From assembly GCA_021613535.1 (NCBI GenBank), contig CP075492.1:1116001-1180000 (forward strand): a stretch of 64,000 nt of DNA. The letters are read 5' to 3'. The position numbers and the translations under genes were made by a program. The first letter of the stretch is position 1; every line of letters begins with the position of its first letter. The DNA is from Adineta vaga. Its lineage: Eukaryota > Animalia > Rotifera. A model generated the notes under the pieces. It worked only from the letters and a program-made list of their open reading frames with translations. It was not told where the DNA came from and did not search any database. This document shows positions 15,478 to 63,817 of this stretch, in pieces.

Positions 15478-18400
15478 ATGGCACGTAACTTGAGACATCG
15501 TTTGTGGGAATCATTTCTTCGGCTAAATCTTTTCAAGAAAACTTCGAGCGATGATCAGACTCTTTCAAAGGAACATATTGCTACTCGCATATATATATGT
15601 TTATTATCTGTATGTGTAGTGGCAATTACAGTTTTTGCTGCATTTATGATTCGAACTGTTGAGAAAACTGAATATGCACCTTCTCAATCAAGATTTTTAC
15701 AATTAACACATAATTATCCAAATACTCTGCATTGTCCATGCTCAAGATCTGATATTACTTATAACACATTTGTCAGTGCCAAAGTCAATTTTCATCATGT
15801 TTGTTCAAGTCAGTTTACTCAACAAATATGGATTGATATGATATTCACAAATGAAAATATTTCGGTCGAGTCTACAGATGATTTTCGTGTTACTCTTAGT
15901 TTCTTCTGGCAAATCATTGCAGGCTTATGTGTCACGAGTAAAAGAAGTTGGGATGATGCTGTTGCAAGTTTTGGTGTATCAAGCATTCTCACTCCAACAG
16001 CCATTGTCGAAGACATCGTTCGAACTCAAGTGCAGACAACACTGAACGAACAGATTGTACTATCTCAAGCAGCAGTAGCTCGTGATTTACTTGCTATTCG
16101 ACGCATGACAAGTGGAAATCAAATTGTATCAGGTTTACAAACAAATTTTTATTTGCGTTATCCACCAGAGGGTTTTGGCTCTACATATGCTACTAAAATG
16201 ACAACTCGAGTGTTCAACGATTGTTCCTGCTTGAGGATCGAAGGTTGTCCACACCCTGCCACTTTCAAAGACAGCCATGGCCATTTGGTCACTGTTCAAG
16301 GAATGATAATGGATTGTTTGATGGTCGATGCTGCACTCGCTTCGACACTCGAATGCTATTATAATCAGACATGTCTTTCTCTCTTGCATCAGCCATTACC
16401 GCTAGATATAAAACCATTGTCGAACAGTTCACTCATACATTTTTCTACACAATCAACTGTGCAAATGCTTTTGGATGAATTGATGATTGACCAAACGATA
16501 AGCAATATCCGCTTCGATTTGTATTATACTCAATGTAATCCTGCTTATTGTTCATATTCTTATACACATCGTTTTGATATTCTTTTTATGTTTACTACAA
16601 TTATTGGTATCTTCGGCGGACTGTCACTCGTCATAAAACTACTTGCACCTTTGATTGCAACAGTTATACTGCGTCGCAAAAATCCAGTTTTATTAGTCGA
16701 AAACGTGACGTATGTACGAGCACCACAACAATATCGGCGTAAGTTATAATTCACTTTTATCGATTTTTTTAAGTAGATCTAAAAAAGTATAACATCTAAT
16801 TTATAGTGAGGACACTAGAGCTCTTCGGTTTCTTGTAAAATCTTGAGGGGTGGGTGTTTGTCTAGGTGATAGTTGAGCAGGTGGCTGAGACAAGGCCATG
16901 TTAATCTCTTGTGACGATGGAATATCTTATGATTCTGTTCTGAGAAATACAAACGTATTTAACAAAAATTCTGTGAGTTTTCGAGCGCGCTGATATTTTA
17001 ATTAGTCTTTTTTTCAATTTATGTTAAATCATTAAGCGTTTCTGGGTTACTCGAAGAGGGAACCTGAAAGTTATACCCACTAATTCTCTTCACTCCTACT
17101 TTCACACACTGCAGCTCACTATTAGGAGCCTCAGGGTTCTTGTTCCTCGGGATTCTATTTCTGCCCGAAACACGAACACATCCGAAAAATCGTCTTTATG
17201 CATGCATCTTTGTACATGCATATGCTTGGGTATATCTTTTCTTTCGTTCTGTGACAAGTCACTATAGAGTCTTGGGTTTCCTGGGAACAGGAAACCGCAC
17301 TGATTTTTGTCTTCATAAGAGAAGAGCTCGAAACTGAGACTCTCACTCACACATCCATATCGGTTTACTTTCAGCAACGACAAAGAAGTTTAAATGGTAC
17401 AGATAATTTTTGTCGCCGCTGTCTGTTCTTCACGTAACAACAATCGAATTTGATTTCAGTGCTTGTGTACTACCGAGTAACATTTTCTGGTGAAAGATGA
17501 AGGTTTAGAAAAAAGAGGATAATGATTCTGACTCGGAGACGGACTCAGAAGCTATTTAATCATATTACATATTGTCGATTATTTTCGTAATTGTAAGAAT
17601 GATTTTCAAAACGAATGACAGTTCAGAAAGGCTCCATAAGGTTTATCCACCTTCATATATGTTCGAATATCTTCGATATTTGTTCAGGGTGCATCAGAGC
17701 CTTAAGTTTTCAGGTGAGTTTTGCGATACACGATATAAAAGGAGTGTTGACATGTGTAGAGATATAAATTTGCCCCTTTCCCCGGCGGGTAGCCATGTAA
17801 CGAATTTTTTTTGTTGAGCTCTCGTTTTCTCAGCAGTATTATAATATGGTATCGATTTTATTTGTAGTTCATATTGTATGGGAACGCGTTCTTTATTTAT
17901 CAAATTACATTCAACAAACAATTGTTTCTTTGAATCTTTTTGAGAATCCAACGCCGCGTATACCTATCAACATTCATCGTGAACAACGTTTAACATGGTT
18001 CTTCATTCTTCTTATCGCTATTTCCTCTATGGCGGTTGGATTTTATATATTTTTTGTTGAACAAAATCAAGTGGTTACAATTGCACATCCATCCCTTGCT
18101 ACCTATCAACAATTGTATAATGATCATCCAAATACATTACAATGTCCTTGCTCACAAATATCTATTCCACATAAAGCGTTTCTCAATGTAACATTTGTTG
18201 TACATCAGATATGTTCGAGTGATCTGATCTCACCAATATGGTTAAACTATCTGGCATCGTTTGATCCGACTCTTGTACCGGCATGGACAGAACAAGACTT
18301 TGCTTTCGACTTTCGTACGGTGGGTGCTTCGTATTTTCAACTTTTAGCTTCTTTCTGCTCAATGGTTCAGATCAACATTGCCGATGCCCAACGTATATTT

Positions 18401-21347
18401 ACCAACACACACTTCATTAATGATCGCGTTCTTGCTCCACCGCTCTTCGCTAAAAAGACTGAGGCTATGATAGATTCCTTTATCAACACAACGCGGAACA
18501 ACTTTGTTCGCACATTCAACTGGGTTAGCATTGCTTTTATCGCCAGTCAGTTTTTCACTGGAGGAAACGTTAATTTTGATATTACTACAGATGAGGATGG
18601 TCAAGTCCATGCTGAGTTTACTGTACGTTCACTCCTTGTTGAAATATCAGACACATCACTGTTTTTTTCGGGACCCTGTGCATGTGGGCAAAGATATTTG
18701 GAGTGCTTCGTTGTACCTGTATTATTTACAAATGCATCATATCTTAATCAATCTGGACTGTATTTATTCTTTCAAGTGATAAACATCGGATGTACACCGT
18801 TAGCTGGATTTATCAGTTCGAAGATCGCGTGGTGGTACAACATCACATATCTGCGATACATCCAAGAAACGTACTCCATCGTCATTAACTCGCAATCGCC
18901 ACCTAACATCGAAGCCCTCAGTGCATCAATACCTACTAACTTTGAAGATGTAGAAACGATCAGTTTAATCCGTGAAATGCTGTTAGAAACAACGATAAAG
19001 AACAATACGCGTTTCGATCAATTCTATAGTGAATGTGCACCTCTCGCTTGTTCATACACAAATGTTCAACGTCGTGAAATTATTGTGGTATTGCTTCTTC
19101 TTATAGCTATATGTGGTGGTCTCTACACAGGTTTTCAAATAATTGTACCGTTGTTTGGCAAACTTCTTTTCTGTTGTATTGATTGGTGGAAAAATCGACA
19201 TATTCAACACGGTGAGTGCTACAATGATTTTTATCAGTGCTGCTTTGAAAGTGATATAAATGAAACCGAAAAATGTAAAGATGAGTGAATTAAAACGTAA
19301 ATCTCACTAATTATCTGTAGACAGATACTTTCATACAAGACTTCACATTTTCATAGCAAGCCTAGTGAGATATTTTATGTGTTGTATGGAAAATTTTCAA
19401 ATTAAAGATATAAACATAGTATTTTTCGGGTAATCAGAATATAACATTTTGGAGGTATCTGGAGACAGCAACGCACTTTCTTTAAACACAAAAACACATA
19501 ATTCAATTCGTTCTCTTTCATGTATAACATACAGTTATACGGTAAAATGTGGATTGTAAAAAAATGCAAACATCACCGATAAAAACAATCTTTTTATTGT
19601 CGTTGAATAATCTTATGAAATATGTCTCCGCCTTTTTAAACTTATGACAATATGTTTGTGTCGATCTTTCCATCATTTCGAAATGGTTTTATTTACAACA
19701 AATGTTGTTGATTTGATTTTATACGTATTTTTTCTAGTACTACCATCAATGAGCGCTCGTCTCAAACATCTTTTAAACGTTACTTATCAATCAATCAAAA
19801 GTATTAATAAGTTTGCGACTGCAACAACTGATGAGCGTTCCATACATCAACAGCAAATATATACTCGAGTTTACTTAGTTCTTTATATAAGCTCTCTTAG
19901 TGTGCTGCTCTTTTATACAGCTATTGTTGAACGTACTATCACCAAAACTTATTTATTATCTTCGATTACGGATTATGAACATCTGGTGAATCTCTATTCA
20001 TATGACGTCAGCTGTCCCTGCACGCATATATCGATTCCTTACAGTGACTTTATCATCGAACTACGAGTGAACGCATACCATGAAGTATGCGTAACGAATG
20101 CGATCGAGTTTATTTTGACATCAGGTAATGTAATGATCTACTTGATATTAGTCTGAAAGGATATTTTCAATTACTGACATAACCTGTAAATATCAGAGAT
20201 TCAAATGCAATTCACTAACAGACATTGTAAAGAAATTGATACACAACAAAATGTTATATTCTTTGTAATATTAGATTTATCGGAACACTTTATTCAGCAT
20301 ATTACTTCTAAACAAATAAAATCCAACGAAACATAAGTGCAAGATACATAACTGAGCAGTACAAAGTAGTCTTCTGAATTTAATCACTCTGATAGAATAG
20401 TAGCAAATGTTTAAACCTTGACATATCTATGATATATCTTTGTAGACGTTATATACTTTCCTGGTGAGGATGTTCAAAGCACAAGTAGTTTCTTATCGTG
20501 GAAGTTATTCTTTATCGACTCTCTCAAACAACTTTGTTCGTTGGCACAAGAAAGTGTCAACAATAGTATTGACGTATTTCTTACTTCCACTTTGCTCACC
20601 AGTCACCTTAAGTCTCCTGTTCGATTCATGGACGAAATGAACGAGACTTTAAATCAGTTCCAAAAACGAATACCAAATGCATTTGCACAAACGTTAGATC
20701 TTATTCGAATAACTGCACAAGGAAACGCTCTTCTAGCTATGTTTTCATCAAACTGGGATTTCGCAGTGGCTGAAAAAGACCGCGGAAGAAATGTTTCGTT
20801 TCTTAATGTACCTGTCATTCATAAAAATATTGAACAAAATACAAGTTGTTCTTGTGTCACTTTACGAACTTGTACAATACCACTACAAATTAATAGTGAT
20901 TATGGAATGGCTAGTGTTGATGGCATGGTATTTGGTTGTTATTTGCTGGAGACAGTACTCCTTTCATCGATGGCTTGTTTCTATTCTGAAACATGCATCA
21001 CCAACGTTCGAGATTCACTAGGTTCATTTCCTTTTACTCCAGAAGGTTTTGTCAAGCTGAACGATTCATCGGTACGATTCAGTATCAATGACACAATCGA
21101 GACAATGGCTTACGAACTATTTATCGAAGCATGGACGAGAAATGTATCTTATGAAAGATTTTTTAATAGTTGTTCTCCAAATTATTGTATTTATACGTAT
21201 CATTATCAATTTGATGCACTTGAACTGTTAATGACATTTCTAAGCGTGTTTTCTGGTCTATCTCGTGGAATTCAGTTCGTTGTTCCTCATCTGATCAAAA
21301 TATTAAAAAATATTAAACGTCGCTTTCGTATCACGCCACTTCAATGA
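15478..21347 (+). CDS. Membrane protein of three tandem (TM - Cys-rich ectodomain - TM) units; exons 15478-16738, 17868-19211, 19738-20124, 20446-21347; about 1297 aa
   Basis: All three introns are phase 1 with GT-AG ends and join the listed ORFs in frame (3894 nt in total). Each unit repeats LNLF/INKF, T-x-x-(Y/F) plus TM1, CPC(S/T), an internal CxC, CxPxxCxY and a TM2 with (G/S)GL. An acceptor at 15466 suggests an unidentified upstream or UTR exon. Confidence 0.82.
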
Positions 21348-54418: not shown

Positions 54419-57400
54419 ATGCATCCTAAAACATTGTTTTATTGGATCTATGATTATGTACTTCATTATAATCTTTTCGTATCCGAAGAAGATGAGCTCG
54501 ACGATAATGAGAATGAACCACAAGATCAAACAATTATTATTCAACATAAAAAATACTCAACATGGTTATATATTCTTCTTTTTATCAGTAAGTAGAACAT
54601 ATAATTTAGAAATCGAGATATGTGATTCACGTTCAAAATCCCAATTGAATATTATTTCCCTTGAGATTTTATCCATAATCTTGTGTCTTATTGATTTTTT
54701 CTTTCAGTGTTTTTCTATGTATTCTTTTACATTGCTATGGCCAAACCTCAGCAACGTACAATCGTGATCTCTGATGTTACAGAGACTAGTATTACTAAAC
54801 TTAATCTTGAATATAAAAAAACTCTTTCATGTCCATGTTCAACCATTTATGTACCACCTAAACAGTTCGGTCTCAATCAAATAAAACGTCATCCTGTTTG
54901 TACAAGCATCTTTGTTAGTCAACAATGGATTGAAAATCTATATTTATCAAATGCCAGTCAATATAGAGCAACAGATTTTCGAACAACAGCTCATTCTCAG
55001 GTAATTGAATATCGTTCTTTTTTTCTTCATTCTACACCCTAGTCAATTACTTCTCGAAATTTCAAATGTTTATTCATAAAAAAAACATTTTTCTAATTTT
55101 TTTACACCGAATATTTGAGTTACTCTCCATGATGTTCTATAGAAAGTTTCCTCATTTAAATTGAGCTTCGTAGTTATTAACTTATAGCCAAACTATTAAT
55201 GTAGCATTTGTATTTGTACTAAGAGTACAATTGGGATAAATGAATAAATAAAATATCGAAAGATCAAGGTAAGGTCTATGTCGTAAATAAATCAAAAATT
55301 CAAATTTTCTTTGTAAGAATAAGGAAGATCAAAAATAATATCATGCAGATAGTTTTCGGTATTTTGACGATGCACTTGTTTTTCAATAGTAATACTTTTC
55401 TTATGTGTATTTTTCACTAAACGTTTTGAACGTTCACGGTGATAATTCATCTAATTTATCAAGTCTGAGCTACTAATATGCGGACTATCTGTCTTTACGT
55501 CGTTAGTAGGAACAATATTTTATTAAAATATGATGATTATTGAATTATGAATTCGACGATCATCTTTCAAGAACTTTCGTTCACTTGAAAATCGATGTAT
55601 CTAATTATTTACTGTATTATATGAAGTAGCATCTTACTCATGAACAGTAGTTAGACATAGTAACGAATGAGTTTTTTATGTATGGCTGTCACGCAGTTTA
55701 TTCATGCAAAAATAGACGTGCTAAAAAATTTCATTAACGGTTCTTTCTAATCGAGGCTTCCGAAATGGTGCCCGGTATTTCAATATACAACATATGGTGC
55801 TGCTTTGATTAGCACAATATGTAAGATAAAATGACTATTACGCGAATTTATTTATTGACGTATGTAAAAATGAAAAAATGTTCTTTGACTCTCAATCTTT
55901 CCTTATCCACAAACGTGACAGATATTAATCAATTAATTTGTAATAACTAATTAGATGAATTATGATAAACATTAAAGAAGTATCGTTTATTAGATAAGAA
56001 CAATGCAATAAATATGTTTTTACTAAACAATAAATATAAAATTGACTTTCTCTTTGTTTAGTTTCAATTTCTAGCTGATTTTTGTTCTCTTGTCCACGAT
56101 ATAATTGATCAAGTAGAGATTGAAATTGAGAATTACGAATTCACTACAGTCGAACTTCTATCAAATGAACAACTTCAATCACAAATGGATATTATTTTGG
56201 AATCAGTTAGAAATAGTGCATCTACTCGATTAATGTCATTTATCAACTATATTAACACAAATGCTCGATCTAACAATTTCATTTCTGCTCTCAATACAAA
56301 TACAATGATTGTAATCGAGTTTCAAAATGACCAATACATTTCCAAGAAAAGGCCAACAATTTACAAAAACTTCTCATTAGACTTGGGAAGATTGGAATAG
56401 ACTTGCAATGATGTGTTTACCCTGCATTTCCTGACAAAACTATAAAGAAGAAAGTATGCTCATATATCATGATCCCAATGAAGTACCAGTGGTTGGATTT
56501 TTCTCATCATGTACACCGTTTGAAGGTTTTCTTTCCAGTACACTCAATTGTCTACATGATAATAAATGTCTTGAATTATTACTCAAATATTTTCCATTTC
56601 ATAATCGAGTATGAATAATAATTTTGTTATTATTAATTTATATTTTATTCTTTATAGATATATTTCAATTTAAATGATTCTATTCTATTTTCAAAAAAAG
56701 CAAATCTTTCCTTTTATGAACATTTGGAAACTCTCTTCATCGATGATTGGTCAATAAAAATTAATTATTCTCAATATTTCCAACAATGTAAACCTTCATT
56801 TTGTTCATATGAAACAACAGATCAAAAAAATATTTATTATGCAATTACTATTCTCGTCAGTCTCTATGGTGGATTCACGATTATACTTCATTCGATAACA
56901 CCACATATTATTAGTGTGATATTGAAATTCAAATCTCGATCATTAAATACCAATGGTAAATGATTCGTATATTTTTCAAAGAGAATAAACAAATATGAAT
57001 TTGATTTTTTTTTTCTATTATAGTTAATTATATGGAATGTTTACGAAAATATGGAAAATTCCTCAAACAATTAAATTTATTTAAAGTGGCTACTGATCGA
57101 ACAATAAACGGTGTTAAACAACAACAGATTCTCACACGTATCTATATAATTCTATTATCGGGTATAATTATTTCTATTTTAAATAGAATATTTTTTTCTC
57201 TATTTTATTCTTAATCTATTAAAATTTTTCATTTGAATTGACAACGAACGCTCGACATATCAACTCACTTTACTCTCGACTGTAGAAGACAGGTATTTTC
57301 TTCGTGTACTGATAGTGAGACGAATTGATATAGCAAGTTTATATACGAGAAAACGATTCAAATTTTTTTCTCATCCACACCCTCGCTAAAGTCGAGAGAA

Positions 57401-60400
57401 TAATTTTTCTATTAAAAATATGTAAATTTATTTTCATTATTAGGTTCATTGTTGATCCTTCTTTTATTTCATACATTTCATACTGAAATAGTCATAATCA
57501 CCGAATCAAATCCATCACTTGACATTTACAAAAATTTAGAAAATTCATATTCAAATACGCTGAAATGTCCTTGTTCATTGATGATAATACCTTACAAAAA
57601 CTTTCTTTCACTTACTCCAATTATACATGAAATGTGTTCAAGTGATCTTGTTGATGATCGTTGGATAACAGTATGGAAAACTTTAAGAGGTATATTTATG
57701 TTACATGATTGGCGTGATCAAGCTTCATCTCAATTTCAATTGTTATCTGATCTTTGTCGATTGACTAATCGAACAATCGATGACGCAGTGCGTCGATTTC
57801 TTTTAGAATCTTTTGCTGCTTTAAATGTTCTTAACAAAGAAGATTTCGAAGCACAATTATATAAAATACTCAATCAATTTTTTCAATCAATCACTACATC
57901 TTTTCGTGTGCTTGTCGATACGACACGTCTTTTTACTCAAGTCGATCAGCCTTATATGAGATGGGTACACCGTAATTACAGAACCTCTTATACAGATCTG
58001 ATCATCAATCTTTGGAAAAATGAAACAAATAATAAAGAATCATTGAACGTAAGAAAACAAAACACCTAAATTCTCAAAAAATAAGAGATTACATTTGAGT
58101 GAGAATTTTCTATATGAATAAAAGATTTGTATGAATTGACATGTGAACAATGAAAACAATATTTATTGTCTTTTTTTTAGTTTACGTTCTCTTTGGCTGG
58201 AATAAAAAATATCGAGTCAGAATCATTCAAATGCATTTGTGCGATGGATCCTGATTGTCAAAATTCAGCTCGTTTTTATAATACTATATTTGAGTTAGCA
58301 CCTTTTTTTGACGTAGATCGAACTTACATTTTAACAGAGTTCGTCGAAAGATGTTCTACAGTCGATTCTCTTCTATTCTCAACACTTGAATGTTTTTACT
58401 TTGACTCTGATTGTTTCATGCTTTTAATACGTGCCGCACAAAACGCTCAGCGTGTATCTTTTGATCTATCAAGATTTTATATTCGTCCTTTCGTGTATAA
58501 TACAACGTTTAGTCATTTTCCACTTCATACTACAATTAAAACAATAGTTGACGAATTAATGATCGAACAATGGAATCCAGTTGTTTCCTATGAACGTTTT
58601 TATCAATCATGTGCGCCAAAATATTGTTCTTATTCACGGCGAATTCGCACTAAGAATACTATTGAACTGATAATGTCATTAGTATCAATGATCGGTGGTC
58701 TTACTACTTCACTAAAATTAATTACACCTTATCTTGTCAAAGTATGTTTTTATTTATGGTCAGTCATCATCAGAAAACAACGAGAACAAGAACCACAATC
58801 GGAACAACAAAGTAGAATTATTGAATCTCTTGAAAATATAGTGTATAGATTATTTTCACAAGTTAAAGATCTATATCTGATACAGTTCGTATCTGATGTG
58901 AGAGAGAAGAAAGTCTTGCATTGTTTTATTGATTTGAATTTACATTTTGATTGTGAGTTAAAATCAATACCTTAAACTTAATGTTCCTTAGACTTATCGT
59001 TCGCTTGTGACCGAACTGAATCAGATTCTGACAGCTATAGCCACGCACCAGTCTATAATGTTGTCCAACCACTATTTTAGTAGTCGTTCTCCTCTGAACT
59101 TTCCATTCATATCAGAAAATATTATATCTCGAAGGTGTGGATATGAATAGAGACACTGAATTGTTTCTTTGTTTGTTTACAGTTCCTCAACAAAGTTGGG
59201 ATCGATTAAAATGATCATACGAAATCTAATTACACTGTTACGAATTCAATTGATTAACTTAAACATCTTCTCTTCACGAGATTTTGATAGTCGAATGGAT
59301 CGAATAACAACTAAACGACTTGGTCAATGGTCTACTCGTTTGCATTTTATTCTACTAATCAGTGGCATTGTTATATTAATTCTTTACACTATCATTCAAC
59401 CTCAGACAATTACGAAAGATTTCCGTGAACCACCTTTCAATCTCTATGAACATCTGGTAGAAAGATTGGAAATCAACTCAAATGTTTATGTTCATCTATT
59501 GCATCGATACATAAGAAATTTGTCACTATTGAACCACGATTTCATCAGGTAAACAGAGATAAGTGTTGATGTCATACTCACAGACATTAATATATAAGTA
59601 TATTAATTTGCGATTGAGAATCAATCTAATATTCTTCTTCTTTTCTTGTGTTTTCAGATTTGTTCAAGCCCATTTGCTTCGGATCAATGGCGAATGAATA
59701 TTACATTCGGTCTCACTAGTAATTTATCCACTGAAATAAGAACAGATTATCGTCGTTTTCTCTCAGCTCATCTGCAATTTCTTCATGGTCTATGTCAACT
59801 CTCTACCCAATTAGTTAATAACTTCGTCGATCAATTCCTTACTTCATTATTCATCACTACACAACTTCTACCTGAAAAGAAGTTTTTTCAACGTCTCAAT
59901 TTAACGATTGAACAAGGTAAATCCAATATTCCAATCAAATTCAATCATCTTCTCTTCTTGATTCGCCGCATAAACCACGGTAATGCTATCATCTCTACAT
60001 ATGGAACGAATTTCGAGTACATTGTTCCTTGGGATAGACTTTACAATGTATATGCACCTGTTCAAGCGATAATTTATAATGATAATTGTTCCTGTGGATT
60101 ACATTCAAATTGTATAACTCAAGCAAATTTCACAGAGCCAAACTCTTCTAAACTGATCTCACTCATAGGTTTGAAAATAGGTTGTACACCAAGTGAATCC
60201 TTTCTTGCTTCAACTCTGGAATGTTTCTATAATCAATCGTGTATTGATCACATCGAAAAATATACGTTGTACACAAATAGTCAGAATTCTTCTCATCCTC
60301 TTTCTATCACAGCCAATCACTTTTCAATCAATACTACAGTATCAGAATTGATACAACATCTGTTCGTTGATGAATGGTTGATAACAAACAATTATATAAC

Positions 60401-62685
60401 CTATTTTCAACAATGTAAACCATTTCTCTGTTCATATACATATATTCAACAATTCAGTGTCTTGTATATTGTAACTACTCTACTTGCTCTTCAAGGTGGT
60501 CTTACCATTGTTCTCAAATGGATATCACCTAAAATAATACAAATCATAGCAACTATTTATTATCGTCGAAAGCAACGCACAACATTGTTCAACCTACTTC
60601 ATCTAACGAGTTGATGTCTGTTCAGATTGTTAATGCAAACGTTAATGATTTCACTTCGAATTTAGAATCAATACCAAGAAATGAAGTACTAGTGTATGTA
60701 TCATTCATCTTTATTTGAATAGTAATTAATGATTTATATGTTTAGAACAAACTTACCATCATCAGCTCGATGCTCTCTTCAAGCCATTATAATATGTATA
60801 ATATTAGTATGTGTGATAATCGTTCTCACTCTATTTTCCATCTACTTTCCTCGACAAGGTAAAAATCAGTTTGTACTGATGATTATGTTACTAAGAATTC
60901 ACTTTTGATTTGTTAGCTCCTATTACAATGAGACCGATGATCAACACTACTTCAGAAACAACATCAACGACAACAAAAACAAGTTCGTTACATCTACTTC
61001 TTATTTTCTCTTCAGATTTAGTATAGTCTAGATTGTGAATGTAAGAGTGAAGTATGTTCATGTTCGCATTTATCTCCTTGTTAATATCAATACGAGAGAA
61101 AATGTCTTATGTAAACTACACTAAAGACAAATTTTAAAGTCTAATGAAGTAGTATGAATTCCTTCGTAATAGATCAAATAACTTTTGTTTTATATTAGCT
61201 AAGAAACATATACCTAAAATAGAGACTACTGCATCGTTAATCCATTTGTTATTTCCATATCACATTTAGATCTGATTCCAGTGACAACTAATCATAGAAG
61301 ATAATAACATAAGAACAGATTTCGAGCAATATATTCAAAGCCCATTTTCATTTACAAGATACCGTTTCAACTGACGAACAATTCACTTGCAATTTATTCC
61401 TTTTTTTTGTATTCAGATGTAGTTTACGTCCTACACTGAAGGCGACTGACTTTAGTATCGTACGCACAATGACAGATCTCATGAGAACATATAAACACTT
61501 CCCGCAGAATTGTTTCTATGTAGAGTAGATCATATCAGGATGGTGGTTGTTGTGAAGAGTATTGTGTTTTTCGTTTTATTCATATCAGCTTGTCATCTAA
61601 AGTTTCAAACAATCTATACTGATACTGAAAATATTCGACCAATATCACCTGTCATTGCTGATTTCAATGGCGACGATCAAGTCGATCTTGCTTTTTACTG
61701 TGTGCGAAACAATAATCTACATGTATTTCTTGGAGATGGCAATGGGACTTTTAAAGAAAAAGTTGCATTTGCAATTGGATATGTTGAATTGATACAAATT
61801 ATCACAACCGATTTTAACCATGATCATCGAGCCGATCTCGTTTTCACTAATTATCGACAAGGGCAAATAGGTCTTTTCCAAAGGTATGATAATGGAACTT
61901 TTCAAACATTCAATATCTTATCAATTCCATTTCGTGATTATCCAATTAACATCGCTGTAACTGACTTTAATGATGACGATAATACTGATATCCTCATCTT
62001 CAATATTTACACTACAAGCATTTATATATTTCTAGGACATGACGACGAAACATTTTCATGGTTACCGTTAGCATATTTCTGGTCCGATGTATTTGAAATG
62101 AAGTCTATTGATACCGCTGATTTGAATCATGATGGTTATCTTGATATTATTGTCTCGACTGCATTAGTTGGAGGTATTACTGCAATTCTAGGAGATGGAA
62201 ATGGAACTCTTGGAAAAATGATGTTCTCCTACACTCAAAGCGCAGTGTTCGATGATGTTCTTATTCGAGATTTCAATGGTGATACTCGATTAGATCTCAT
62301 TGTTTCGTCTAAATCTTTAAACGATATTCGCGTGATGTTGGGATATGGTAATGGTTATTGTCATTTGAATAAAACGTTTCACATTGAAAGGCCTACGCAT
62401 CCATTTAAAATTGCAACTGGTGATTTCAACTGTGATGGTCAACTAGATATTGTTTTCAGTCAATCTGATCCATTTCGAATAAGTGTACTAGTTGTTGGTT
62501 TAGGAAATGAGATTTTTGATATACAAACAGTGTTGTTGATGGAATCCAGACGTGACTATATTTGGATCGATGTCGATGATTTCAATGGTGATAGTTATGA
62601 TGATATAATTGTTGTTGATGGATCATCTGGTTGTATCTTCATTCTTTTAAATGTCTGTGAATGTTGCATACATGAAAATCTATAG
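54419..62685 (+). pseudogene. Second three-unit 2-TM/Cys-rich membrane protein gene, fused through an extra TM and a Thr-rich stalk to an FG-GAP domain; carries a stop (56398-56400) and several frameshifts
   Basis: Exons approx. 54419-54587, 54708-55000, 56062-56608, 56658-56955 (unit 1); 57024-57161, 57444-58048, 58181-58811 (unit 2); 59183-59548, 59659-60693 (unit 3); 60746-60858 (TM); 60917-60982 (stalk); 61589-62685 (FG-GAP). Same unit motifs as 15478-21347. Lesions near 56400-56470, 59210, 59465 and 60580. Confidence 0.7.
61589..62685 (+). CDS. FG-GAP/VCBS-repeat beta-propeller exon (intact reading frame)
   Basis: Seven D(F/L)NxDxxxD repeats with LGDGNGTF-type linkers; acceptor at 61588. 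Confidence 0.85.
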
Positions 62686-63005
62686 ACAAAATGCCTTAAT
62701 TTACTTATCAATTCAAATTGCACACATTTGTGTACATGATTATATCTAATTTCTTTAATTTTTATGTTCTATTCTCAATTTTTTCAGTATTATTCATTTA
62801 TCTCAATATATCTATATGTTACTTTAAAACATTAAACGATAGCACCAGCCACAGCCATTCTCAAGATGCAGATACATATCTTTCGAGTCCAGAGATAATT
62901 CACTTACAGGATGCTATCGACAAAATGAACGAAATAAAAAAACAAAGGATAAATCAACCAGTAGCCATCATTCGTTTCTCCTCGACAATAGCGAAAATGC
63001 TTCCG

Positions 63006-63064: not shown

Positions 63065-63325
63065 ACTTTCCCAATAAACATGACAATCTTTTAGTTTTAT
63101 TATTATTGGATTTATTATGCAATTCGTTTAATGTATTGTATTCCTTCAATATTCGATGAGTCATAGATATACGTTTTATTGCACAACAAGGAGAAACTTT
63201 TCCGTTCTACCATAAATTGTACATGAAAGCCAATGAGACGAACAAATTTTGTTTTTTTTCTGTGGATGACATCATGTTCTTTTGGTAGACACGATGCATA
63301 TATCATTGATTATACGTTTTTAGAA

Positions 63326-63817
63326 ATGCGTCTTACGATTGCACATGTTTACAGTAAGGTACGTGCACAACTTGAACCATTTATAATTGATATTGATCCA
63401 TCATACACAATCTTACAAATAAAAGAGAAAATTACACAACAGACATATGTACAATCATATGATCAGTTTTTAAGTGTCGATGGTCGAACACTTGACGATG
63501 AACATACTATTTCATCATATGATTTTATTAAAAGTGGAAGTAAAATAACTTTAGTGGTATTTCCTAATGTTTTGCGTGAAAAGTATCGTATATACGTTGC
63601 TATTCAAGGTCCAAACGAAGAACATAAGACTATTGATTTAGACATTTATTATTATGATACTGTTGCTCAAGTCAAACAAACTATTTTTGAATGTACACAA
63701 ATACCAACAGGCAAGCAAAGACTTATTTTTGCTGGTAAACAATTATCAGATGAACGAATTTTCTCGAATTATGGTGTTCAGAAGGAGAGTACAGCACTTC
63801 TATTTACTAGAGACTAG
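63326..63817 (+). CDS. Tandem di-ubiquitin-like protein without C-terminal Gly-Gly
   Basis: Two UBL domains (TILQIKEKI...DQFLSVDGRTLDDEHTISSY; DTVAQVK...QRLIFAGKQLSDERIFSNYGVQKEST), ending LLFTRD. An acceptor at 63323 may indicate an upstream exon. Confidence 0.8.
   Translation: MRLTIAHVYSKVRAQLEPFIIDIDPSYTILQIKEKITQQTYVQSYDQFLSVDGRTLDDEHTISSYDFIKSGSKITLVVFPNVLREKYRIYVAIQGPNEEHKTIDLDIYYYDTVAQVKQTIFECTQIPTGKQRLIFAGKQLSDERIFSNYGVQKESTALLFTRD

Follow-up and report, generated by a model that had tools for sequence, protein, structure and literature searches.

A seven-bladed FG-GAP propeller as the probable 3' end of a three-unit membrane protein gene of Adineta vaga, a bdelloid rotifer

Is the FG-GAP propeller found downstream of a three-unit membrane protein gene of Adineta vaga, a bdelloid rotifer, a gene in its own right, or is it the last exon of that gene? 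The locus lies within a stretch of 64,000 nucleotides (nt), C3:1116001-1180000 of the haploid chromosome-level assembly of A. vaga (100.8 Mb, six contigs), which we call the window and whose numbering is used below. An initial annotation had proposed that three channel-like units are joined, through a seventh transmembrane segment (TM7) and a stalk, to a propeller that the list of open reading frames (ORFs) presented separately. We favour the reading that window 54419-62685, on the forward strand, is probably one A. vaga gene of about 1,750 codons; that three units, TM7, stalk and propeller share one gene is very likely.

Each unit opens and closes with a transmembrane (TM) helix, and between the two lies a Cys-rich ectodomain of about 320 residues; three units follow one another in one chain. 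A CPCS motif and an end of the form ..C.P..CSY..-TM(..GG..) are found in units 1, 2 and 3, which stand in fixed order on one strand, in a region of about 30% G+C with short GT..AG introns. Beyond unit 3 we found the cytosolic linker NIVQPTSSNE...RNEVL (60581-60691), the TM exon peptide TNLPSSARCSLQAIIICIILVCVIIVLTLFSIYFPRQ (60747-60857), the Thr-rich stalk peptide PITMRPMINTTSETTSTTTKT (60919-60981) and the FG-GAP exon where the initial annotation had placed them, and the three junctions that it had drawn (60693/60746, 60858/60917 and 60982/61589) are all GT..AG and in phase. The TM7 exon is 47% identical to its counterpart in paralogue L032, and the stalk peptide pairs in alignment with ISPMINVTIETNSS of paralogue L033.

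The strongest evidence that these parts belong together comes from paralogues within the A. vaga genome. Thirteen comparison loci were picked by similarity of the propeller exon alone, and at 13 of 13 the propeller is preceded, on its own strand, by units 1, 2 and 3 in that order, with unit 3 at 52-65% identity and ending 300-2000 nt ahead of the propeller. Starting from unit 3 instead, in a genome-wide search that required at least 45% identity for a same-subtype match, at least 44 of 64 unit-3 copies carry an FG-GAP exon of the subfamily 300-2000 nt downstream on the same strand, as judged by cross-matching two propeller searches; this pairing count is a lower bound, with about 110 of some 650 candidates scored. 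The gap between unit 3 and propeller always encodes a polybasic start with an NxVQPxSS linker, a framed TM segment and a Thr/Ser-rich run, and the pattern [RK]xSFK-TM-FSIY..RQ is kept in 22 of 24 paralogues. The window gene also has the family's RKKR-type linker, and its propeller exon bears the family's signature, an opening C-x-L-x-F-Q motif preceded by a phase-1 intron.

In some paralogues the parts are not separated by introns at all. The linker/TM7 intron is missing in eight of the 24 paralogues, and in eight of the 24 unit 3, linker and TM7 form a single intron-free open segment of 298-438 amino acids, which in L031 and L033 takes in the stalk as well. At C6:13474097-13476445 the unit-3 and propeller matches lie 1269 nt apart (3 x 423) in the same frame, with an open frame of 781-786 amino acids; from these coordinates and open-frame lengths, unit 3, TM7, stalk and propeller appear to constitute a single ORF there. 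The introns among unit 3, TM7, stalk and propeller vary by paralogue (L002, L004, L005, L007, L012, L014, L016, L024 and the C6 copy), and since their presence or absence differs among paralogues, intron loss or gain is active in the family.

The same arrangement is found in other bdelloids, whose gene models are predictions independent of both the A. vaga assembly and the initial annotation. With a single paralogue ORF of 573 amino acids as query (L037:7017-8735), which spans unit 3, linker and TM7, we retrieved many annotated proteins that combine the unit with PF01839 and PF13517; they come from A. steineri, A. ricciae, Rotaria sp. Silwood1, Rotaria sp. Silwood2 and R. sordida. Rotaria sp. 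Silwood1 P0151 (892 amino acids), for example, runs from unit 3 through KNRKKRLNVIDQ.., TM7 and a T-rich stalk to CQLQFQ..FG-GAP..LLNSCKC. A profile search gave full-length models of 1640-1750 amino acids in A. steineri and A. ricciae, and also I4U23_011494 in A. vaga itself; their N-terminus resembles the MHPKTLFYWIYDYVLHYNLF of the window, and they show seven Ca-type loops and five to seven hydrophobic segments above the hydropathy cut-off used for counting, that is, most or all of the seven. On the contigs of A. ricciae P0396 and Rotaria P0151 the linker is followed by a TM7 exon of 45-46 amino acids, a stalk mini-exon of 29-31 amino acids and a propeller exon opening with P-x-CQLQFQ, with the same three introns as proposed for the window. 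These bdelloid relatives (P0396, 1740 amino acids; A. steineri P0391, 1734 amino acids; P0151; I4U23_011494) thus have the same units, linker, TM7, stalk, FG-GAP exon and introns, their unit 3 being 50-67% identical, and they are nameless and uncharacterised in public databases. The UniRef name 'Envelope protein' (P0154/P0156) was dropped, there being no Pfam match, no BFVD match and no significant PDB profile match.

The order linker, TM7, stalk and propeller, together with its introns, is shared by dozens of paralogues and by two other species, which goes far beyond chance. Homologues do carry the fusion that the initial annotation had expected of them, and its view that the propeller is not a separate gene is borne out by all 13 propeller-selected loci, by at least 44 of 64 unit-3 copies and by the models of other species. 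Sequence comparison therefore supports the propeller as the putative 3' exon of the three-unit gene, joined through TM7 and a Thr/Ser-rich stalk. We found no description of a three-unit, TM7 and propeller architecture in the literature searched. FG-GAP and NHL repeat proteins have been reported as expanded in A. vaga (PMC3846280), and a survey of rotifer lectins omitted membrane proteins and makes no mention of propellers (PMC8878817).

The assembled sequence of the gene is interrupted by frame breaks, which raises the question of whether this copy is intact. Four read runs were compared with the window, every one of them as assembled contigs and none recorded as RNA; runs X2 and X3 are one sample (2013) and behave as DNA, with even depth over introns, while X1 was guessed to be RNA and is filed under another organism label. 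The window is one A short after 60580, where the initial annotation had already corrected a frameshift, and every covering X2/X3 contig has the extra A. The missing A creates a false stop at 60612-60614, and with it restored the frame reads ..YYRRKQRT-NIVQPTSS.. free of stops. This stop is most likely an assembly artefact, with a difference from the sequenced sample as a possibility. We found two more 1-nt gaps in A runs inside unit 3, which had not been remarked on before, one at 59207, where all X2/X3 contigs add an A and restore the conserved loop ..WDRLKMIIRNLITLLRIQLINLNIF.., and one at 59462-59464, where gaaag stands in place of the gaaaag needed within one homologous exon.

These breaks could instead mean that the window copy is a decaying pseudogene from which no full-length protein is made. 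Besides the breaks at 59207, 59462-59464 and 60580, this explanation could draw on a dispersed repeat inserted in unit 1 (55040-55830), on the oversized last intron, on a public annotation that is partial only and on the stops that several paralogues carry inside the propeller exon. However, all DNA contigs that cover two of the three breaks contradict them, and each of the three is a single A missing from an A run, the usual error of long-read assembly. The repeat is exactly intronic, with no coding residue lost: it spans about 790 nt without a long ORF, homologue residues 88 and 89 border the intron that holds it, and at least seven partial copies of it occur on C1, C3 and C6 at 67-85% identity. 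Moreover, there is no in-frame stop within any homologous exon, and neither the conserved cysteines nor any of the seven Ca-type loops has been lost. The frame breaks of the window are most likely A-run assembly errors rather than decay, and a pseudogene is unlikely. In the DNA reads, a 5-nt indel polymorphism at 59637 falls inside the 109-nt intron of unit 3, and the 606-nt last intron, which is unique in the genome and in which genome comparison detected no repeat, shows many indels and substitutions, as non-coding DNA would.

The probable artefact at 60580 has consequences for the public annotation. NCBI model I4U23_011067 (P0160, 817 amino acids), which is 98-100% identical to the window in well-aligned blocks from 56456 on (for instance 56456-57136), is shortened because of it and omits TM7, stalk and propeller. 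The same model treats 58049-58438 as an intron, of which 58193-58438 is conserved unit-2 coding sequence in paralogues and other species; it probably mis-splices there. Three shortfalls in one gene suggest residual homopolymer errors in the assembly that break models such as this one.

Several points weigh against the single-gene reading. We saw no spliced RNA read or contig across any of the three junctions in these four contig runs; none of the joints listed, which resemble cross-mapping from paralogues, fits the junctions. The fusion is thus argued by comparison, because transcript evidence was not found, and the gene models of the other species are themselves predicted, not transcript-derived. 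The public model terminates exactly at 60611, ahead of TM7, stalk and propeller, and the break at 59462-59464 is absent from the read-difference table, so that it has no correction from reads. The last intron measures 606 nt, compared with roughly 65-200 nt in relatives, and has a weak donor, GTTCGT. The window copy is also the only one with an in-frame ATG (61540) and a signal-peptide-like start ahead of the propeller exon, and the protein has no recognisable cytosolic signalling domain.

Some of these points would fit two genes, a three-unit gene ending near 60.6 kb and a secreted FG-GAP protein starting at ATG 61540 with the signal peptide MVVVVKSIVFFVLFISA cleaved before CH. The proposed start codon is in frame, the first Cys is preceded by a hydrophobic stretch with ISA at its end, the public model stops where such a first gene would end, and 606 nt separate the propeller exon from the stalk. 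In addition, the only perfect matches of run X1, possibly RNA, are two 151-nt contigs in the propeller exon (62229-62379 and 62537-62687), other X1 matches within 57-63 kb, units 2-3 included, being short and below 95% identity. Nevertheless, the stop at 60612-60614 stems from a 1-nt gap absent in the reads. Furthermore, in about 23 other readable paralogues a pyrimidine tract and AG stand 2, 5 or 8 nt ahead of the first Cys codon, always in phase 1; no ATG occurs there in any of them, and in most the frame is closed by stops a few codons upstream. Two genes would leave the conserved TM7 and stalk exons orphaned, and no stand-alone protein of 210-667 amino acids identical to the propeller ORF is on record. 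A pyrimidine tract read in frame resembles a signal peptide, owing to the hydrophobic residues specified by T-rich codons, and we read ATG 61540, which lies in the T-rich tract of the acceptor, as chance. We consider two genes very unlikely and proceed with a single gene, the map of which is given in Table 1.

The 5' part of the gene was compared with that of A. ricciae P0396. Exon 1 is 41% identical to exon 1 of P0396, which has an intron at the same place and in the same phase (donor GTAAGT at 54588, phase 1), and exon 2, with its acceptor ..ctttcag at 54700-54706 (AG 54705-54706), is 51% identical across all 98 residues. Unit 2 is made of two open stretches, 57449-58066 and 58193-58972, split by a short in-frame intron. 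In unit 3 the exon after 59657 begins ICSSPFASDQW, and exon 8 of P0396 begins ICTSPMTSDQW.

Table 1 Features of the proposed gene, in window coordinates.
Feature	Position	Strand	Description
Exon 1	54419..54587	+	ATG, acidic cytosolic N-terminus (MHPKTLFYWIYDYVLHYNLF..EEDELDDNENE..), first half of TM1
Exon 2	54707..55000	+	Remainder of TM1, beginning of ectodomain 1, CPCS motif
Intron 2	55001..56061	+	About 1.06 kb, unusually long; dispersed repeat inside at roughly 55041-55831
Rest of unit 1	56062..57139	+	Several exons, approximate borders: ectodomain 1, TM2 (..AITILVSLYGGFTIIL..), cytosolic loop
Unit 2	57449..58972	+	End of TM3, ectodomain 2, TM4; approximate borders
Unit 3 exon a	59183..59548	+	Cytosolic loop (..WDRLKMIIRNL..LNIFSSRDFDSRMDRITTKRLGQW), TM5, beginning of ectodomain 3
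Intron in unit 3	59549..59657	+	109 nt, GTAAAC..TTTCAG
Unit 3 exon b	59658..60693	+	Ectodomain 3, TM6 (about 60453-60536), polybasic RRKQR, linker NIVQPTSSNE..RNEVLV
Linker/TM7 intron	60694..60745	+	52 nt, GTATGT..TTTAG; split codon gt/a
TM7 exon	60746..60858	+	..RCSLQ, about 22 hydrophobic residues, FSIYFPRQ; split codons at both ends
TM7/stalk intron	60859..60916	+	58 nt, GTAAAA..GTTAG; split codon g/ct
Stalk mini-exon	60917..60982	+	Thr-rich PITMRPMINTTSETTSTTTKT
Stalk/propeller intron	60983..61588	+	606 nt, GTTCGT..ATCAG; split codon a/ct
Propeller exon (last)	61589..62685	+	Seven-bladed FG-GAP; N-terminal Cys, C-terminal LLNVCECC, stop 62683-62685
Start codon of the two-gene alternative	61540..61542	+	In-frame ATG giving MVVVVKSIVFFVLFISA followed by CH.., signal-peptide look-alike in acceptor polypyrimidine tract

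Other family members form a loose cluster on C3 that covers the window and the following 28 kb (window 15478-21347; L041:7140-8213; L042:1222-5336; L042:7325 to L043:840) and includes members with and without a propeller. One member, 17 kb beyond the window, combines TM7 with a T/S stalk and FG-GAP repeats at just 22-39% identity. The next ORF downstream of the gene (63233-63817) codes for a pair of ubiquitin-like domains (Pfam ubiquitin in two stretches, 1.7e-28).

What kind of head does the gene carry? Pfam recognises FG-GAP_3 (2.5e-32, 111.7 bits; cut-off 26.9) and FG-GAP (1.5e-18, 66.7 bits; cut-off 22.1) in ORF 61510-62685, and seven DxNxDxxxD loops, Ca2+-type by sequence, are little changed over 12 paralogues, in agreement with the seven repeats counted in the initial annotation. 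Structure models were made on the Rotaria homologue P0151, as a stand-in for the window protein. In the P0151 model the propeller is confident (predicted local distance difference test, pLDDT, 80-92), TM7 is a helix and the linker and stalk are disordered, as expected of a flexible tether. Foldseek matched this propeller to FG-GAP propellers of solved structure (E 1e-12 to 1e-9), best of all to the fungal N-acetylglucosamine (GlcNAc) lectins AAL2 and PVL (E about 1e-12, template-modelling score by target 0.57-0.59), and further to Streptomyces UmbA4, to CRTAC1 and ITFG2 and to the alpha heads of integrins. Among solved chains, those closest in sequence are UmbA-type 'secreted esterases' (E 1e-4). 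Taken by itself, the head is an FG-GAP propeller of the ordinary kind.

Comparison with known propeller proteins sets the arrangement apart rather than the fold. PVL (2bwr) and AAL2 (4tqj) have a seven-bladed FG-GAP propeller like that of the window, at 17-21% identity and compared by overall fold only, but they are soluble and stand-alone, whereas in the window gene a seven-pass membrane body carries the propeller on a tether. The heads of integrin alpha subunits are likewise seven-bladed extracellular FG-GAP propellers with DxDxDGxxD-type Ca2+ loops; their propeller stands at the N-terminus, ahead of the thigh and calf domains and a single C-terminal TM helix, whereas the window propeller is C-terminal, after TM7. 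Integrins also bind Ca2+ only in blades 4-7 (in some 5-7) and require a beta subunit, whereas the window propeller has a loop in all seven blades, and Pfam finds no integrin leg (thigh/calf) domains in the window gene or its homologues. Teneurins, as here, have a TM helix followed by an extracellular C-terminal beta-propeller, but they are single-pass proteins with EGF, YD-shell, Tox-GHH and NHL, whereas the window gene carries FG-GAP.

Relatives of the propeller outside this family are of several kinds. Ranked by summed score, the best 150 database matches to the propeller exon are multi-propeller giants of up to 7,386 amino acids, and the A. vaga genome contains many intron-free ORFs of 1,400-1,800 amino acids with several FG-GAP propellers in tandem. 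The nearest non-rotifer relatives of 61591-62682 are not animal integrins but bacterial VCBS/FG-GAP proteins and Streptomyces UmbA-type lectin propellers, at 27-33% identity. The propeller head may be of bacterial origin.

The head is also the variable part of the protein. Across the same paralogue pairs the propeller is 29-48% identical and unit 3 52-65%, so that the propeller diverges faster. Many family models of about 1,300-1,450 amino acids lack a propeller altogether, as does the window paralogue at 15.5-21.3 kb. In A. steineri P0178, P0207 and P0481 an NHL propeller follows the same TM7 and Thr-rich stalk, and these NHL-tailed relatives reach the TEN_NHL model at 27.4 bits (cut-off 27.1). 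These observations agree with the proposal of the initial annotation that the module may be swapped, and they support a propeller head exchangeable between FG-GAP and NHL, a swap shown in A. steineri only. In A. vaga we found no NHL exon adjoining a unit-3-type match among the matches listed, and the NHL exon at L046:1429-2355 has no three-unit body in the roughly 1.4 kb examined upstream of it. NHL propellers encoded by a single exon and about 300 amino acids long are abundant in A. vaga, with 128 scored matches at 45-59% identity and 903 candidates.

The three-unit body is of another nature. A model of the unit built on P0151:1-430 with 38 aligned units (mean pLDDT 78, predicted template-modelling score 0.64) shows a long helix running from the cytosol through the membrane, followed by a mixed alpha/beta ectodomain with long helices at 127-157 and 168-212 and conserved cysteines, and then a second long TM helix with a nearly invariant Gly-Gly. 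Foldseek found no match for it in the PDB (best E 1.8), an all-against-all comparison by VIA gave at best Z 7.5 over about 85 TM-helix residues, which is background level, BFVD gave no match, and the ESM Atlas matches were rotifer clusters only (template-modelling score 0.75). The units have no Pfam match (E up to 1), and a PDB profile search was blank. As modelled, the unit matches no solved or viral fold, in searches made with the whole unit, which is dominated by its TM helices, and not with the ectodomain alone. The three-unit body matches no described kind.

The initial annotation had described the gene as channel-like, with a putative pore. An ion channel resembling ASIC, ENaC or P2X, pseudo-trimeric within a single chain and gated by the propeller on binding ligand or Ca2+, would account for a topology of two TM helices and a large Cys-rich ectodomain that occurs exactly three times per chain, for the Gly-Gly pair that hardly varies in the second TM helix across all unit types, and for the long continuous helices that extend from the TM helices into the cytosol. 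ASIC/ENaC, P2X and PAC do have two TM helices round a large disulphide-rich ectodomain, three per pore, a likeness of topology and number only: their subunits are three separate chains with neither a seventh TM helix nor a propeller, whereas the window encodes one chain, and they have no sequence or fold similarity to the window units. Neither ASC (PF00858) nor P2X has a Pfam match on any unit (E up to 1), the ASIC/ENaC/P2X ectodomain fold is absent among the structural matches of the whole-unit model, and the channel-related structural matches cover 60-70 helix residues only, at background level (Z 6.1-6.9). No conserved charged or polar pore signature was noticed, without a systematic search, and many family members lack the propeller entirely. 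The terms 'channel-like' and 'putative pore' are thus not upheld, the likeness being one of topology. The idea of a Ca2+-binding or lectin-like sensor on a pore holds in part: the Ca2+-type loops and a homologue fold nearest to AAL2/PVL agree with the sensor, and the pore finds no channel match. A channel function would have topology and the number three as its sole basis and is improbable, and so is the channel with its gating propeller as a whole.

How would the protein be arranged, and what might it do? The topology is proposed because there are seven helices and basic residues follow TM2, TM4 and TM6 and precede TM7. The N-terminus and three short loops would be cytosolic, and the three ectodomains, stalk and propeller would lie outside; after TM6 a polybasic linker would remain in the cytosol, and TM7 would bring the chain outside again. 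There a disordered Thr/Ser-rich stalk would hold the seven-bladed propeller, with a Ca2+-type loop in each blade. The fast-diverging, exchangeable propeller could be the ligand-binding head, its ligand most likely a glycan bound in a Ca2+-dependent manner, and the conserved three-unit body could serve as a pre-assembled pseudo-trimeric membrane scaffold or transducer. We tentatively suggest a cell-surface recognition or adhesion receptor, because of the faster divergence of the propeller, its loss, its swap for NHL and the presence of at least 44 copies per haploid genome. A bolder version, in which a single-chain pseudo-trimeric ligand-gated channel or mechanotransducer of novel fold bears an exchangeable Ca2+-dependent lectin sensor and the dozens of bdelloid copies would form a surface repertoire, for instance against fungal or bacterial glycans, is a long shot.

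For this locus, what is new is that reads contradict the frame break truncating the public gene model, that the fusion has been examined across the whole family and that the NHL swap is documented. A 1-nt gap in an A run of a chromosome-level assembly suffices to truncate a public gene model, and because such gaps truncate models, A. vaga annotations probably underestimate the size and architecture of the family. Bdelloid rotifers, which are ancient asexuals, have large gene families specific to their lineage and of mostly unclear role. In the family described here, a three-repeat membrane body of unmatched fold is coupled to a propeller head that can be exchanged, being either FG-GAP or NHL. 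Should the three units indeed close into a ring, they would provide a natural single-chain form of a trimeric membrane assembly, of use in structural work and protein design. A haploid genome of 100 Mb with at least 44 FG-GAP-tailed copies shows the pattern expected of a recognition repertoire, which might act in immunity, in self/non-self discrimination or in the sensing of substrate or prey.

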